Assembly (NCBI RefSeq): GCF_000150275.1
Contig: NW_002060945.1
Span: 2,317,172-2,381,171, forward strand
Length of the DNA stretch: 64,000 bases
Reading direction: 5' to 3'
DNA from: Trichoplax adhaerens
Lineage: Eukaryota; Animalia; Placozoa
In this document: one piece after another, positions 11,223-23,940 of the stretch
Position numbering within the stretch: position 1 is the stretch's first letter
Layout of the letters: the number at the start of each line of letters is the position of its first letter
Made by a program: the position numbers and the translations under genes
The notes under the pieces: generated by a model
The model's database searches: none
The model's input: only the letters and a program-made list of their open reading frames with translations
What the model was told of the DNA's origin: nothing

Positions 11223-12953
11223 TCATGTAACATTTTTCAAATCAGCTGTAAATAGAACCTAGATAAGCATATAAGAGCAAAATAGAAACGAATTTAGCGT
11301 AGCAAATATTATGTATATCCAATCTGTTAAATATTCAATTATTCTATTGACTTTAATATTAGGCATAATTACAGAGTGTGCCCATCCAGCATAAGGGCCG
11401 TAGAGTTTTAAGAAATATTCACCTAAATAATAAAAATAGACCGTAGATAATGTGTTATTTGTAGTCAAGAAGCAATTCATGACTTAATTTTAAACTAATT
11501 TGATATTTATGATATCATTTGTTTCGTTACTTACTAATCTCAGTATAAGCTTTTCCCGTAAGTGATTTTTGTTTTCGGAGGCCTGGAATGTAATATCTTG
11601 ATGAAATCTGAAAGACATGTGTATCTACCGGTACAACCGAAGGCTTATCTAAAGACATTAAGCAAATGCAGTCAGCTACTTTAGCTCCAACACCATATAA
11701 CTGCCGCAGCTGTTGCTGGCATTCTTTGTACGGAGTCTGACGAAGTGAATATAGCCAAGCGACACTAGGATAACCAATACGAATCCGATTTAGCTTGAGA
11801 GATAAATTTTTTAAAATTTGTTATAATGGTGCAACAATTAGTTAATTTTACCCTTTCTTATTCAAAATCTTTGCAGATTCATTGATGTACTTTGCACGGT
11901 AGCCAAATCCCATATCACGCATCACTTTCTCTGCATCATGCTGTGCTAAAGCTGCAATCTCAGGAAACTGATAATAATCGATGCCATCGACATTCAAAAG
12001 TCTAACATAGTTTAACAGTATAAGAAGAGTTCAATTTCGCCTAACGAAAACGTTCTTCTTACATGTATGCCTAATATAATGAATTAATTTTTATCGCGAA
12101 GTTATGAGTTTAACCTACTTTCGACCATATCTTTTGCATAGATTACCAACCATACCGGTAATTCTGGAAATATTATTATTTGATGAGCATATAAAGGAGA
12201 ATAAATTTTCTACAGGATCTTGTCTAAGAATACGAATTCCGGTCATTGAAGTAGCAACTTTAGCAAAATTACTATCAGCTTTACTCCATTCAGCATACAG
12301 TTGTCTTAAATTGACATCTAGCTGAAAATAGTCTTTAATGATAGAGTCAAAGGTTTGGTATTGGCTCTCAATGGCATCCATGCTTTCTAAACGAATATAA
12401 TTAATGTTAAGGAGCTAGCAATTTCTAATGTGACATGTTCACTCGATGACCAAGTCGCTAGCAATTGCTTTAATCTACAAATAGCTTAGTGTACATAATA
12501 TAGAAGAGTTAATTACATGAAGAAAGGGTAATTTTCACATTCAATATGGACAGGTCTTACCCTCCAATCTGTAGCATTATTGAATGCAAACTATTACGAA
12601 TTTTTCAACAAGTTACCTTGGTAACCAGCTCCCTTCTTGGCAATCACATGCCGCCGACCGAGGTCAGTACCAGCTTTCCTCTTCCTTTTCGATGAAACCT
12701 TGGTATCTTTCCATGGTCCATGAATCATGTATAATAAATTTTCATCATTTCTATCTTGTTTTAACGTCCATACCATCTCGGCAATTACTCCACGCCATGA
12801 CGCTTGAGTATCACCATCTACTGTTGCTGTTTCGTTCTCGCGAGCGATCTTTCTCCAAGTAAATTGTTGACCACTTTGTAATGTCTTACTTAAATTTAGC
12901 TCACCCCTAGGTAATTTAATTACACGCCAAGTTTTGAACAGCGACTCTGCCAT
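11223..12953 (-). CDS. OGG1: 8-oxoguanine DNA glycosylase/AP lyase, 6 exons
   Basis: Exons 12953-12617, 12386-12119, 12001-11852, 11764-11535, 11422-11373, 11258-11223. Motifs: [46 protein letters not shown], Hh[13 protein letters not shown] (catalytic Lys), VPVDTHV (catalytic Asp), [12 protein letters not shown]. Confidence 0.97.
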
Positions 12954-14072: not shown

Positions 14073-14948
14073 ATGGCAAAGGTAGTCTTAATCACTGGCT
14101 GTTCGACTGGAATCGGTCTTAAGTTAGCGCTTAGACTAGCTCAAAGTCAGAATCCAACTTATAAAGTCTATGCAACGATGAGAAATCTAGAAAAGCAAAA
14201 GCAATTGGTTCAAGAGGCTGGAAGCGCTTTAAATAAAACGCTGCTAATTCGTAAGCTAGATGTAGGAAAAAGTGATCAAGTGCAAAGTGTGGTAGAAGAA
14301 GCCGTGCAAAACGAGGGCAAAATTGATATTTTAGTTAATAACGCCGGTTTTGGATATGTTTGTGCTTTCGAAAGTATGCCTATGGATATCGCTCAACAAA
14401 TGATGGATACTAATTTTTTCGGCTGCATGCGTTGCATGCAAGCTTGTATTCCACATATGAAAAAACAAAACTGTGGGCATATTATTAATCTTAGCAGTCT
14501 AAGTGGCATCTACGGTACACCATTTCATGGTTTATATGCATCAACTAAGTTTGCAATGGAAGGTTTAAGTGAATCTTTAGCACCGGAATTAAGTTATTTT
14601 GGTATTTCCATTAGTTTAATTGAACCAGGCCCGGTTGCTACTACCTTTGTTGATACATGGATAGATCGTAGAAAAGATTCCAAAGAGAACAAACAGTTAG
14701 GCCAACAAACTCAAAAATTGACTGATGGTATCATCGATTTTATGACTAAGCGGCCACCTGATGTAGTGGAGAATGTCGATCATGTGGTTGATGTCATTAT
14801 GAAATGCATCAATGATAAACCTCCCTCACTTAGGTATCCAACAACAGAAGTGGTATTAAAGGCTGCTAAACGTAAATTTATTGATCCAACTGGTGACTCC
14901 GTAACTGATTTCACGACTAGTTTTTATCCCATTTTTAAAAAGGACTAA
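14073..14948 (+). CDS. Short-chain dehydrogenase/reductase, RDH8/HSD17B1-like (copy 1), intronless CDS, 291 aa
   Basis: VVLITGCSTGIG (TGxxxGxG), KVYATMR, ILVNNAG, catalytic Ser and YASTK, EGLSESLAPEL, SLIEPGPV. Confidence 0.93.
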   Translation: MAKVVLITGCSTGIGLKLALRLAQSQNPTYKVYATMRNLEKQKQLVQEAGSALNKTLLIRKLDVGKSDQVQSVVEEAVQNEGKIDILVNNAGFGYVCAFESMPMDIAQQMMDTNFFGCMRCMQACIPHMKKQNCGHIINLSSLSGIYGTPFHGLYASTKFAMEGLSESLAPELSYFGISISLIEPGPVATTFVDTWIDRRKDSKENKQLGQQTQKLTDGIIDFMTKRPPDVVENVDHVVDVIMKCINDKPPSLRYPTTEVVLKAAKRKFIDPTGDSVTDFTTSFYPIFKKD

Positions 14949-16374
14949 TCCTACTTTACGTGACCACATAGCAATGCAAGATATTGATCATTTCATATTA
15001 ACTCTGGAAATCTTGCAACTTTGATTTCATTTGACGAATACTAATTATTAACTGCAAATTCAAGCTGGGTTGAAGTCATATATTGTAACACTTTCTGCCT
15101 GCTCGGCTCAAAAACAAGTGATCCATTCCTTTCGATAATACTGTATATCCAACTAAAATTACACGAGCATAGAATTAGAAGTGATAAATCCAAGATGGCA
15201 TCATCAGATTGATATTTCTAGCATAAGCTGGTAGCCTACCGTTGTGATTATCATGTACAAGATATACTGTATCTTACAAGTTATATAACACTTTCTTAGT
15301 ACGCATTAATTGATGCCATTTATTTTTTGCTTATACAATATAGTATAAGCTGTCGGTAGAGAAAATAATTTACTGGTGGTAATGCAATTATTTTAAATTA
15401 TTTTAACACTTACTTCATCAGTCTAATTTGTTTATCATTTCATACTTTGATATGAAATAATTAACAATATCAACTGTTGAACATTGAATCAATTATATTT
15501 GTAAATTACAAATGGTAGAAACGTAAAGTAGAACATATTGCGTATATTCATTTAATTTGTATACAGTACACCAATTAATTTCAAGTTCTTATTAATGAAT
15601 CAATTATATTCTAATAATTATAAGAATTTACAATGATGACTAAAATTTGGAGGGATATTCTAAAAGCACGATATCTCTTACCACTTATCATGTGTATGGT
15701 TTAAAATTCTTGAAAAATAATTATATCAATGCTTTTGATATAGTATGATCTTTGTAGGAGTGGGTACTTTTGATATTATTGACGTGAAGTTATGATTGTC
15801 CAATATCGCTGACTGTTAACATTTAAATTTAATACTTCAAGGATAACTCTAATTCTATTCTTGCAAGGTCTTTACATTTAAACGATCTTTGGTATCCATA
15901 TTTGGAGCATTTAATACACAATCAACTAATACTGTGCTGATTATGCTACGTGATAATATACATAAAGTGTATAGCACGCGCTAAACAAGTAAATGTATTT
16001 ACTATAAATTTCATTTTATAATCACGTTTTGTGTGTACAGTATATGGTCTTAAGCCTTATTAACAAGTATAAAGCCTCAAGTGTACGCTTCTATAAATAA
16101 ATCTAAATTTGTGTGCATAGATCATGTTTGATGTTTTAGCTCATGTAGATCTAGAAGCATTTGTTCTAATAAATAGTTCTGTTGATATGGTAGTTTTGTT
16201 CGACAATCGCAGACACATCCCATGTTGTGATCATATTAATAATCAGTTACCATGACACTATTTTTTAGAGGAAGATAAATAGAAATTCTCATCATTAGTC
16301 GTTCAACAGTATATACATATCACAATATTAGTGAAGGTGTTTAGTAACATACAGTATATTATACATGCGAGTAT

Positions 16375-18190
16375 TCAAGTAGTAGAGCAAGGTTCTAGCA
16401 TTGATAGCATTAGGCAATAAAATAGTCTTGGCGTTACTGTTTCATCAAATGATAGATATTTCCATCCAATAAATTGGCCACAACTTGAGCAGATACCATA
16501 CGACCATGAAAACCTAGAGTATGATTGTTAGCACAGAAATAGCATTGATATTTTAAAAGCAGAAAGTTAAAAATAGCATTCAATAACACATAGTTCAATA
16601 CAATCATTAACTAACCCTGGAAACCAAGACTGATGGGTAGCCTCTTCACTACTCCACGAAGTATTTACGACCTGACTGGTTGTTACAGTTTCATACTGTT
16701 GCCCACCAGAATCGACGTAAATTGCTAATGGTCCAACTGATGACATACTAATCAAGTAAGTATAAAGCATAATTAATTTTCATGTTGAAGTTAACGATAC
16801 TTTCACATGAAATTATCCTACAAGCAAACTATAGTGGTAGGCGAGAGTGAACGTTCTTATTTCATCTAATTACTCATTTTACCTAATTACATCGGCATAA
16901 CGAGTAATGACTGCTTGACATTGTTGACAGCAAAGCTCGCTGTAACGATTTAAGTAACCAAGTATCGTGCGTAGTCTGTTTATTATATCATCCATGCTAA
17001 GTAGATTTAATCTCCATAGAATAGGTACAGGTAACTGGGAAGCCACATTGATAGAGAATTGATCACAACCAATATTATTTTGAAATATTTGGTGTGAGTT
17101 GTCGAACCAGCCTGAAATTTGTTTCTTGATTTTCTTTCGTAAGGTAGCTGTGTTATGATGGATCAAAAGAAGTTTACCAGAATAATCAATATGAATTGCA
17201 GTAAGACTACTAGTTAAAAAACTATCGCAGTCTACTATATCAGTGTTAGTTATGATAGTATGCTCAAGTTTACTTACTTTTATCATATAATCTATAAACC
17301 CATATTGGCCAGCAACTTAAGTTAGGACGAGGTTGGGCAAGTATGGTATTAGCCATAGCTAAATGATCTAAGGTAAATCAATACGTGTATAAGAAAATCT
17401 TTTTTTTTTCATACTACTAACCATTACGCCATGAGTGTTTGGCCATTTTAGCCAGGCATTTTAATTCAAACTATGTATTACTGTACTCTACTTTCAAGAA
17501 CGATACTGTCATAATTTCTCGTATATATTCGCGTATTACACGATGAGATTATTCTATCATCTAGACACTATAACCATGGCCAATCAAGCCAAATTCTATT
17601 CACTTGCTACTGTAACAAACAAGACGATAACAATTAATGATGATATCAAGGGTAAATGAAGTACCGTTAGCAGTTGGCTCTTGTGGATCTTGTAGAATCT
17701 TGACCTTGCCTGTCGCAAAGAGTTCGCCCTCGACTTGTGAAACTTGAAGTGTGACAAATTTCTGGCGCCCAATGAGTAAACCAACTAGACAACGATCTGA
17801 GCCAATTTGGAATGATTGGACATCTGCGGTAACACCATAGAGTGATAAAGCATCGACATGGCGATCATTTTGTCGATCTAAAATATGATTACATGTAACT
17901 AGTCCTATGCTTTGCTCTCCTGATAGAAACTCGTCAATTTCAATGTCAATATTCATAAATTCAGCAACACGAAATGGTAGTATTTGTCCAGGAAATAAGG
18001 TTATATTATGAAGAGCAAACAACGTAAGCTCTACAACTTGTCCATCTCGATATCGTTGACCAGTCGATGAAGTATCATCGCCATCACTATTTAAATACGG
18101 CGATAAATAATAGTGCTGACCAGGCAAGCTTTTATCGTACATCTTAGGGTTAGTCGTCTGTCCAGGATAACCTTCATTCATGCGCTCCAT
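16375..18190 (-). CDS. Divergent cereblon paralog (LON-N, helical bundle, CULT domain), 5 exons
   Basis: Exons 18190-17665, 17367-17278, 17147-16883, 16747-16616, 16513-16375 splice in frame with canonical GT-AG. Motifs: YDKSLPGQHYYL, ITLFPGQILPF, LSCWPIWVYRLYD, CCQQC, SWFPGFSW..CSSC..IGWKY. Confidence 0.9.
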
Positions 18191-18768
18191 TTCAATTAAT
18201 CGGGGGTTAATCACAACACGAGTAGCTCGATGAAATCATCAATTGTCCACTATGTGAACATACTAAGTCAATCAAAGCCAATTAGCAGGATCTAACTGAA
18301 TTCATTCTAAGTCTATAACTTGAATCAATAACATGAATGGAGATAGAGTGATCCTAGAGACAAATTGAAATGATCGAGTAGCAACAACATCGTCGTCCAA
18401 ATAATCATGGAAAGTAATCAAATCGACATTTAGTATTAAAATACGATCCACCTTCCACGCCCATGCCGACACACCCAAACAAGGCATAAAATGACTGCTA
18501 GAGCCAAGCTCATCCATACTCAATCCACTATCGTTATGGACGGTATGCGTATTAATGTAGGGAGTGTCTACGACTATCAGAAGAAGTCCTGCCTACCGTA
18601 CGTCCTGGACTAATTACTCGCTTGGGTAATGGACAGACGGATGCTACTGAATACAGTACAGTAGAATACTCTTGCTATAGGGCTTCAAGCCCACTCAATC
18701 TAGTTGACAGCAACCCTGCAATTAATTGGTAATAAAATAATAACTTTTGAACTTTTAGGCGTGCAACC

Positions 18769-19635
18769 ATGGTCAAGGTAGTTTTAATCACAGGATGTTC
18801 TACTGGAATTGGCTTGGCTTTAGCTGCACGATTAGCCAATAGTCCAGGAGCTGAGTATAAGGTATATGCAACGATGAGAGATGTTGGCAAACAAGGTCCA
18901 CTAGTGCAAGCGGCAGAAAATTCCATCAATAAAACTCTTTTAATTAGGAAATTAGATGTTTGTCAGGCTAATCAAGTAGAAGAAATTATGAAAGAGATAT
19001 TAGACACGGAAGGCAAAATTGATATTTTAGTCAATAATGCAGCGTTTGGCCTAGTTTGTGCTTTTGAGAATATGCCCATGGAAATTGCTCAAAATATGAT
19101 GGATACCAATTTTTTCGGATGCATGCGCTCCATGCAAGCTTGCATACCTGTCATGAAAAAGCAAGGCTATGGTCAGATCATTAATGTGAGCAGTTGCTCT
19201 GGCATATTTGGTGTCCCATTCTTAGGGTTATACAGTGCTTCTAAGTTTGCGTTAGAAGGTCTTAGTGAATCCTTAGCTCCGGAATTAAACGCTTTTGGTA
19301 TTAATATAAGTTTAATCGAGCCTGGACCAGTTAATACACCATTTATTGATACCTGGGTCAATATTCGACAAAATTTGAATGAGCAAGTCGATCAAAGAAC
19401 TGGCCAGATGGTAGATACTGTCGCTCAGACTATAATTAATCGGCCAATGGATGCTAGACAATCTGCAGATGGAGTAGTTGACGTTATTATGAAATGTATA
19501 CGTGATGAAAAGCCATTATTGAGATACCCTACTGCGGAGAGTGTGACCAATTTAAATAAGCGAAAATTAGTTGATCCAACCGGTCAAACCGTTTTGGATG
19601 TTACGAGAGGATTTTACCCAATATTCGATCAATAA
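18769..19635 (+). CDS. Short-chain dehydrogenase/reductase, RDH8/HSD17B1-like (copy 2), intronless CDS, 288 aa
   Basis: VVLITGCSTGIG, KVYATMRD, ILVNNAA, YSASK, EGLSESLAPEL; colinear paralog of 14073-14948. Confidence 0.93.
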   Translation: MVKVVLITGCSTGIGLALAARLANSPGAEYKVYATMRDVGKQGPLVQAAENSINKTLLIRKLDVCQANQVEEIMKEILDTEGKIDILVNNAAFGLVCAFENMPMEIAQNMMDTNFFGCMRSMQACIPVMKKQGYGQIINVSSCSGIFGVPFLGLYSASKFALEGLSESLAPELNAFGINISLIEPGPVNTPFIDTWVNIRQNLNEQVDQRTGQMVDTVAQTIINRPMDARQSADGVVDVIMKCIRDEKPLLRYPTAESVTNLNKRKLVDPTGQTVLDVTRGFYPIFDQ

Positions 19636-21601: not shown

Positions 21602-23940
21602 ATGGCTGACGAAGAGAACAACCATGATGATATTGAGATCGCTGAACCAAGCACAAGTGATGAAAGTATTAGCGATGATGAGAGTGATGACGAAGAATTT
21701 GATGATGCTGTTGACGATTGGGGTGACATTGATATTGTGGAGGTCGCCGGTGAACACGACGATGACGAGCAAGATACTAGCCAGGAATCGCAACAAGACG
21801 ATGATGACGACAGTAATGATCACAATTTCGATCCCTCTTTACCAGTTCATCATCAATATTTAGGCTCTAACTTAGAAGAATTTACTGGAAGGACAGTTTT
21901 TGAAGAAGATCAAGTCATTCAATTACCTATTCTAAGATTACCGTCGCTAGTTTTATTTCCTGGCGAAATGTTACCTCTTCATTTTTATATGCCTAATCAA
22001 GTTAATATGGTCAGAAATCTATTTAGGACAAATAGAACACTAGGTGTCGTCAATTTAAAGCATAGCAATCAACAATGTCGATATGGAACAACAGCTGAAA
22101 TTATATCAGTCCATGCAGATGAATTAGAAGGTGGGATAAGCGTTAAAAGTATTGGTAGGCAACGTTTTTATATCAAAAGTACAAGACGTCAAAGTGATGG
22201 AATACTGCTCGCTAATGTCGAGATTATGAAGGAATCGTCTGTAACCAAGTATCCAGCAGGTAGCTGATATGAGTAGGATAACCCTATTTCACAATAAGCA
22301 GTTTAAATGATCAATATAAAAATCGAATTATTTCTAATAGCAATCTGCGATACAAAATCAATCTTATGCCAGAAGAAAGGGTTTAAACAGTCGATGTACA
22401 AATCAAATTATTTCTACTAGTAATGTGGATAGTATCCTGACTCTAATAATATACTCTAGCATGATTATTAATGTCATCACTAATACTTTACTAATCCTAT
22501 TTTAAAATGGAAGAGTTTGAAACTTTGAATAGTCAATGTAATCAAATTATTTCTACTGATAGTGTAATAGTTTCAACGATATATTCTTGCATGACTATTG
22601 TTATCACCACTAGCATTTCACAAATTTTTACTATACTGCAGTAATAATACTAAGCAAAGTAATTCATAAAATCCGACATTGTAGGCTTCGTCATCTCGAA
22701 ACCTGGCTGTCGTAACCGAGCGTTGAGTACATACAAAAATCTATCACCTCACCCTAGCTGGCTCTACGAAATGTACAATGAAGGTAAAATATCAACTTTA
22801 AAGTGGACTTGACGAATGTATGTAATAATATCGGTAAAAATAATTGACAAATTAAGATAGAAAAGGCATCAAGTATCTCGTTACAATCAATATAGCTAGA
22901 TCGGGCTGTATGGCGATATATTGTATTGATATGGAAAGTAATCTTATTCCTATTAACTAGTTAAAATCCCATTTTGAAAATAGATTGATACTGTACGCCA
23001 GCATAAGTATACTAAGGGGAGATATATGTGCTTCACAATAAATATATATATATATATATATATATAATCGCAATTTTCAATATAGTGTAGTTGTTAATCT
23101 CCCTGCATAAAAGGACTAAGCGTTTTATACGTACAAGGCATTGAATTAACAACCATGTATGTTCTACTTGCAGATATTCTTATTCAAAGAATTAAGAAAG
23201 AGTTGCTGCAATGGAATAATGCTTTTAACCTATCTAATCTACCCGACGAACCGACGCGCTTTTCATATAAATTAGCTAATGGACTCCCACTAGATGACAA
23301 CATTCGGGTCGAATTATTAACATTGAATTGTACCGTGTACAGGCTACAAAAGGAACTGGATTTAATCTGTCGCTATACTATGTTATCATGCAGTACTTGT
23401 CAATCACCAATAACTGATAAAAAGAATATCTTCAGGTTAGCAATGATAACTTATCAATACTCGATTTTTGAACTCTGATCATCCCATAGTATAATCTATT
23501 TCGTAATATAAACAGAATAATTCTTATATTCCTCATAGAACTAATGCAATCATATTCACGACTTCATTTCTTATTTAGTATGTCCATGAATGGCCCAATG
23601 TCGTCCTTTGTTAATCCCGGTGGATACGTACATGATACCTTTACTGTCCGAAAAGTCTCCAATATTGTCACCATTGGACAAAAGTCACTACAATATAGCT
23701 GGTTTCCTGGGTAATCTTTAATTTATTTAATTTAAACCACCGGTAATGCAGTACTACCTTAATATTCCATCTCGCTTAAACTATAGGTATGCATGGACAA
23801 TTGCTCAATGTAGTAGTTGCCATCAACACATGGGTTGGAAATTTACAGCTACCAAACACTCATTAAATCCTAAACAATTTTATGGTCTTACTCGTTCTTC
23901 TGTTCAACCTGTTATTACACTTGATAGCACTACCGTTTAA
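21602..23940 (+). CDS. CRBN: Cereblon, CRL4 substrate receptor (canonical-type copy), 5 exons
   Basis: Exons 21602-22259, 22685-22783, 23174-23435, 23579-23710, 23787-23940. Acidic N-terminus, [84 protein letters not shown]. Confidence 0.97.

Follow-up and report, generated by a model that had tools for sequence, protein, structure and literature searches.

A second, divergent cereblon gene in Trichoplax adhaerens with an intact tri-tryptophan cage and a replaced degron-reading rim

Thalidomide-class drugs and most clinical degraders act through the receptor cereblon, and the logic by which it reads natural degrons has begun to emerge only recently. In the human protein (CRBN), the G-loop site is made up of N351, H357 and W400 (PMC12999498). 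The structure of human CRBN bound to a native peptide with a C-terminal cyclic imide shows the imide sitting in the tri-Trp cage, a hydrogen bond from N351 to the -1 carbonyl of the degron, H397 packed against the -2 Tyr, and van der Waals contacts from Y355 and H357; single mutations of N351, H397, Y355 and H357 impair native degron binding (10.1101/2025.03.24.645050). A cereblon carrying the double mutation Y384A/W386A cannot bind thalidomide (PMC9217950), and the DDB1-interacting segment of human CRBN comprises residues 194-248 (10.1101/2024.01.18.576231). Bacterial CULT proteins consist of the CULT domain alone (PMC4287342), and secreted CULT proteins are known from animals, including the Trichoplax member XP_002115135.1 (Lupas et al. 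2015, PMC4287342). A full-text literature search for cereblon together with Trichoplax returned only this 2015 CULT-family paper, in which the Trichoplax protein appears only among the secreted CULT proteins (PMC4287342).

Our study examined a window of 64,000 nt of the T. adhaerens genome that holds two LON+CULT genes, here called copy A, a canonical cereblon, and copy B. Copy B is a genuine cereblon paralogue that is expressed, maintained by selection and strongly diverged; its cage is intact and its degron-reading rim is replaced. It has the domain order of canonical cereblon (human CRBN and copy A), that is, belt motif, LON-like domain, helical bundle and CULT domain, and shares with it the four zinc Cys, W380/W386/W400, the WFPG motif and an ungapped CULT core. 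It differs from canonical cereblon by N351D, Y355Q, H357Y, Y384F, V/I388Y, H397F, F402Y, G416C and R419L, and by a LON exon that phmmer does not recognise as cereblon against the PDB. With the bacterial CULT protein of Magnetospirillum ('cereblon isoform 4', PDB 4v2y; E 0.016 for copy B exon 5) it has a zinc CxxC pair and the cage in common, but copy B also possesses LON and helical-bundle parts and groups with copy A. The secreted animal proteins are a second CULT-bearing animal lineage that, like copy B, is present in placozoans; they combine a signal peptide with CULT and have no LON, whereas copy B has LON and helical bundle, and its reading frame has no N-terminal extension. Yippee/Mis18 beta-tent proteins (PF03226) share the fold class and the zinc site but, unlike copy B, have neither tri-Trp cage nor LON, and this genome has its true Yippee gene at another locus.

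Two short-chain dehydrogenase paralogues are interleaved with the two cereblon genes, the local order being dehydrogenase 1 (plus strand), copy B (minus), dehydrogenase 2 (plus) and copy A (plus). The features are as follows.

14073..14948, plus strand: short-chain dehydrogenase paralogue 1, an intronless ORF flanking copy B; cluster mate RDD39931.1, 'Retinol dehydrogenase 8 [Trichoplax sp. H2]'
16258..16352, minus strand: copy B 3' UTR intron of 95 nt, GT..AG, starting 22 nt past the stop codon, deduced from loose-end sequence
16375..16513, minus strand: copy B exon 5, including the stop; second zinc pair CSSC (C391/C394), with F339 (Y384F), W341 (W386), Y343 (V388Y), F352 (H397F), W355 (W400), Y357 (F402Y), C371 and L374
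16616..16747, minus strand: copy B exon 4, CULT sensor loop and first cage Trp, bounded by RNA joints 16747/16883 and 16513/16616, with D306 (N351D), S307, G308, Q310 (Y355Q), Q311, Y312 (H357Y), H332, Q333 and W335 (W380)
16883..17147, minus strand: copy B exon 3, remaining helical bundle and C-terminal part of LON; first zinc pair CQQC (C279/C282, equivalent to human C323/C326)
17278..17367, minus strand: copy B exon 2, helical-bundle segment with NLSCWPIWVYRLYD, bounded by RNA joints 17367/17665 and 17147/17278
17665..18190, minus strand: copy B exon 1, ATG at 18190, short N-terminus, belt motif YDKSLP..HYYLS and N-terminal part of the LON substrate-binding-like domain
18191..18447, minus strand: copy B 5' UTR, colinear with the genome; RNA contigs 18152-18281, 18252-18392/18447 and 17782-18402
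18769..19635, plus strand: short-chain dehydrogenase paralogue 2, an intronless ORF; cluster mate RDD39932.1 (Trichoplax sp. H2)
21602..23940, plus strand: copy A, canonical cereblon of 434 aa, exons 21602-22259, 22685-22783, 23174-23435, 23579-23710 and 23787-23940

Copy B is a minus-strand gene of five exons (16375-18190) with a coding sequence of 1152 nt for 383 aa. A first-pass annotation of this DNA had described it as a five-exon ORF without stops or frameshifts, and this holds: the frame contains none of either, and the limits 16375 and 18190 are exactly the stop and the ATG. As an in-frame stop lies at 18236-18238, 18190 is the first in-frame ATG. The introns (297, 130, 135 and 102 nt in transcript order) are all GT-AG, with phases 1, 1, 2 and 2. 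Copy A is likewise built of five exons with identical intron phases.

Transcripts of copy B come from three studies, and their splice junctions coincide exactly with those of the model. In X16 and X17, from different studies, single RNA contigs (1165 and 1158 nt) join all five exons, with CT..AC ends on the plus strand and skipped lengths equal to those of the modelled introns, and two of the joints are seen in a recorded RNA-Seq library of a third study (X19). This evidence consists of assembled contigs, from which presence and splicing were read and which cannot rank expression level. The loose ends of X16, X17 and X19 at 16353/16360 continue with the letters of about 16228-16257, in the 3' UTR. 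X19, which is metatranscriptomic, also contains unspliced contigs over copy B introns at 17118-17307 and 17507-17694, for which pre-mRNA or DNA carry-over is possible; in run X13, which was guessed to be RNA, introns and intergenic DNA are covered as in a DNA library. RNA contigs of copy A leave exon 1 at 22260 and go on with exon 2 sequence as modelled.

Pfam and PDB searches were run exon by exon for copy B. Exon 1 alone was matched by PF02190 (LON_substr_bdg) with an E value of 1.6e-8 and 35.2 bits against a cut-off of 28.7; searched against the PDB, it found no cereblon at E<=10 and only a bacterial Lon N-domain (2.6e-4). Exons 3, 4 and 5 each match solved cereblon structures, and their PDB matches at E<=0.1 are all cereblon or bacterial CULT proteins. 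For exon 3 the cereblon match has an E value of 1.5e-9, with residues 1-79 on human 252-329, and the C-terminal part of LON is matched weakly by Pfam (E 0.15); exon 5 is also weakly matched by Yippee-Mis18 (PF03226, E 8.6e-4). Without gaps, residues 2-43 of exon 4 correspond to human 341-382 and residues 1-41 of exon 5 to human 384-424, and it is these PDB alignments, ungapped or nearly so, that set the human numbering used for copy B. On this numbering every substitution that the first-pass annotation had named is correct, and the neighbouring copy A does keep N351, P352, H357, H397 and F402, as well as Y355 and Y384. Copy B carries five changes absent from that earlier list, H353G, Y355Q, V356Q, G416C and R419L, the first of which is common to copy A and many invertebrates. 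The exon running from S/MS.. to ..WFPG/ has boundaries common to copy A (23579-23710, plus strand), copy B and exon-sized ORFs of many animals (P0151-P0164).

Conservation within the pocket was counted by column in 57 full-length LON+CULT cereblons aligned with the spliced translations of copies A and B. The 57 were drawn from a profile search with the two exon-1 peptides, in which 1.84 billion representative proteins were scored; only two clusters fell below 1e-30, one of A type and one of B type, and the others were ordinary cereblons, those with names coming from a cnidarian, a scallop, locusts, a filarial nematode, an amoebozoan and a green alga. Copy B keeps C323, C326, C391, C394, W380, W386 and W400, so that the earlier reading of CQQC, CSSC and three cage tryptophans as retained is confirmed by both the PDB alignments and the column counts. 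All four zinc Cys are invariant (57/57), and the cage stands in the context WFPG..W...C..C...GW. Seventeen CULT columns are invariant in all 57 sequences; copy B keeps 14 of them (the four Cys, the three Trp, F381, P382, G383, G344, G354, G399 and P411) and changes only N351, H357 and Y384. H397, present in 55 of 57, is F in copy B; position 388, which is I or V in cereblons, is Y; and position 402, F in 51 and Y in six of the 57, is Y.

In all, the changes in copy B are N351D, P352S, Y355Q, V356Q, H357Y, E377H, H378Q, Y384F, V388Y, H397F and F402Y, with G416C and R419L as further changes in the CULT domain. The degron-reading rim of N351, H357, Y384 and H397 is replaced by D, Y, F and F, and none of these four states is shared by any of the 57 cereblons. 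Copy B is therefore a cereblon homologue and paralogue, yet not a canonical one in its degron-reading rim. Given the roles described for the human residues, copy B keeps the cage and replaces all four degron readers outside it (N351D, Y355Q, H357Y and H397F), whereas copy A keeps all four. Of the 48 columns in which 85 % or more of the sequences agree, copy A matches 47 and copy B 38, the lowest count among the 59 sequences, and seven of the ten deviations lie in the CULT domain. Among the 25 conserved CULT columns, copy B changes five of the eight that contact ligand or substrate, the other three being the tryptophans, against two of the other 17 (Fisher's exact p 0.017, indicative only, with contacts classed in part from the literature).

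The first-pass annotation had spoken of a rewired degron-binding pocket, and this describes the rim, which is replaced along the sensor loop and on the H397/V388 side, but not the imide-binding core, which is intact. The term overstates the change, since the three tryptophans, an aromatic residue at 402 and a gap-free alignment are all kept; there is no indel across 84 aligned CULT residues, the sensor loop (341-361) included. Cage binding may be unaffected by Y384F, F402Y and H378Q. Position 378 appears unconstrained, since H, Y or F is found there across the family. At 377/378 copy A reads Q/Y, in place of the E/H of many animals.

We hold with moderate confidence that copy B is a functional, selectively maintained, placozoan-lineage-specific cereblon paralogue that serves as a second CRL4 receptor with its own substrate set. 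The earlier proposal of a neofunctionalised paralogue thus stands in so far as this is a real, expressed and constrained gene with changes on degron-reading residues, and is narrowed by the intact pocket core and the confinement of replacement to the rim. A local duplication next to canonical copy A most probably gave rise to copy B, which then changed fast and asymmetrically and was conserved afterwards, with its architecture kept (belt motif, LON-like domain, helical-bundle motif WP.WVY..YD, and CULT with four zinc Cys). The cage would still take a small cyclic ligand, the rim would select a different sequence or chemical context, and copy B would act as a second CRL4 substrate receptor while copy A keeps the ancestral job. 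An altered specificity and a role as ligase receptor are reasonable to propose for copy B.

It is possible, though we consider it unlikely, that copy B still reads C-terminal cyclic imides and that its rim reflects drift or affinity tuning, the two copies being used in different cells, stages or conditions (subfunctionalisation). Such a division of labour would accord with the intact cage tryptophans, zinc site, WFPG motif and spacing, with the occurrence of F402Y in six of 57 cereblons and the freedom at position 378, and with a promoter region of copy B's own, head-to-head with a dehydrogenase gene. However, N351, H357 and Y384 (57/57 each) and H397 (55/57) are invariant or nearly so across animals, an amoebozoan and a green alga, which makes free drift at these positions unlikely, and in human CRBN single rim mutations impair binding of the native degron.

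In cereblon the segment that docks on DDB1 belongs to the helical bundle. Exon 2 of copy B contains the motif NLSCWPIWVYRLYD, whose counterpart is human 236-249 (10 of 14 residues identical), inside the segment 194-248, in line with the earlier note that it matches the DDB1-contact segment; it fits the family consensus P.WVY..YD more closely than does the motif of copy A. The counterpart of human 194-235 has about 22 residues in copy B versus about 42 in human. Binding of copy B to DDB1 is plausible, and its docking is made uncertain by the segment ahead of the motif, which is about 20 residues shorter. This short segment would suit a functional but DDB1-independent cage protein, such as a ligand sensor, a chaperone-like binder or a decoy competing with copy A, as would the very divergent LON that matches no PDB cereblon, the absence from copy B of the acidic N-terminal tail present in copy A, and the existence of stand-alone CULT proteins, both bacterial and secreted animal (PMC4287342). 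We regard this as doubtful, however: the best-conserved motif of the helical bundle is kept, and closer to consensus than in copy A; belt motif, LON and CULT all lie in one reading frame that is conserved in orthologues; and another full-length cereblon, P0005 (384 aa), has a linker as short as that of copy B.

The origin of copy B was approached through the genome and through phylogenetic inference. The genome, searched over 105.6 Mb in 1414 contigs with the window on a contig of 9.66 Mb, holds exactly two LON+CULT genes, copies A and B, which are 29-32 % identical to each other, compared with 63.5 % for the dehydrogenase pair that flanks copy B; exon 1 of copy A matches vertebrate cereblon with an E value of 1e-33. 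The terminal branch of copy B is the longest in a maximum-likelihood tree (2.5; median 0.7). Holding A and B together gave a tree that surpassed the free search by 25 log-likelihood units (p-AU 0.93). The quick free tree had placed copy B basally beside non-animal sequences, and this was rejected as a long-branch placement because the constrained tree has the higher likelihood. Copy B thus sits inside the eukaryotic cereblons as sister to copy A, and a lineage-specific duplication is the best reading, with the exact position made less secure by the long branch. Evolution since then is strongly asymmetric: in relative-rate tests against seven outgroups, copy B carried 53-83 changes of its own and copy A 27-36 (p from 0.04 down to 1e-7), so that copy B has evolved two to three times faster than A.

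Present constraint on copy B was assessed from strain variation and from orthologues. Strain variants comprise five synonymous and two nonsynonymous changes (T266A and R142C), giving a pN/pS of 0.11 that indicates purifying selection (binomial p 0.007 against neutrality), in a sample of only seven variants; the pocket codons are unchanged in the contigs that cover them. Relatives of copy B elsewhere were found as B-type exon-1 proteins in other assemblies, namely P0002 and P0166 (Logan) and P0165 (ENA, a 6.2-kb contig), the last being 91 % identical to the other two. They are about 61-66 % identical to exon 1 of copy B and only 26-30 % identical to copy A, and the exon-1 orthologue at 66 % has an open reading frame. 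As a B-type orthologue exists beyond this genome, the A/B duplication predates that split. The A-type orthologue P0001 is 67 % identical to copy A, against 66 % for the exon-1 orthologue of B, and, assuming equal divergence times, copy B would since the split have changed about as slowly as A.

At 17 exon-1 positions where A has the family consensus and B differs, the B-derived state is identical in two orthologue sequences at 13, and these include changes in near-invariant columns (YLG to YLS and GRQRF to GRQKF). Orthologue conservation of copy B applies to exon 1: a protein search with an exon 4 profile found only canonical fragments of the VNPGGYVHD...WFPG type from other animals, a protein search with exon 5 gave no candidate orthologues, and a metagenome scan with the B exon-1 alignment gave no matches. 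That copy B is a decaying, still-transcribed duplicate whose pocket changed under relaxed constraint would fit its longest branch in the family and its lowest match to conserved columns, but is very improbable against a frame free of stops and frameshifts, splice sites that are all intact and used, a pN/pS of 0.11, an open exon-1 orthologue sharing 13 of 17 derived states, and the retention of every structural invariant (four Cys, three Trp, Gly and Pro).

A bolder version of the second-receptor reading, which we think improbable but worth stating, is that copy B constitutes a second, placozoan-specific degron pathway that reads a chemically different end-group or modification and delivers proteins to CRL4. 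The cage in copy B would be lined by its three Trp and by Tyr or Phe at 357, 384, 388, 397 and 402, and at 351 an acidic residue replaces the universal hydrogen-bond donor Asn; in such a pathway the ligand may be cationic or some other group that is not an imide, or else a cyclic imide whose backbone context is inverted. If this were true, copy B would be a naturally evolved orthogonal cereblon. As it stands, copy B is a naturally occurring variant of a ubiquitin-ligase receptor that is a major drug target. Kept under selection beside a canonical copy in an early-branching animal, it offers a natural test of which residues determine substrate context. The design of orthogonal cereblon-ligand pairs could take it as a template, and it hints that evolution can retune CULT cages.

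The two dehydrogenase paralogues are 63.5 % identical to each other and cluster at >=90 % identity with RDD39931.1 and RDD39932.1, which are consecutive accessions in the Trichoplax sp. H2 proteome. This hints at, but does not establish, a missing annotation there for copy B, whose gene is located between the two. RNA contigs of dehydrogenase 2 begin at 18750. Copy B and dehydrogenase 2 stand head-to-head, with only about 300 bp (18448-18749) between their outermost RNA contigs, and this gap suggests a shared bidirectional promoter region. Upstream of dehydrogenase 1, at 12115-12953 on the minus strand, ORFs were judged by eye to resemble exons of an OGG1-like 8-oxoguanine DNA glycosylase. Elsewhere in the genome, the gene for the secreted Trichoplax CULT protein reported in 2015 was found neither by the exon 5 search nor by the PF03226 search, the latter returning only Yippee and copy A exon 5. 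The Yippee gene itself (G000:C1413:7420590-7420907, L006) is the sole strong PF03226 match.
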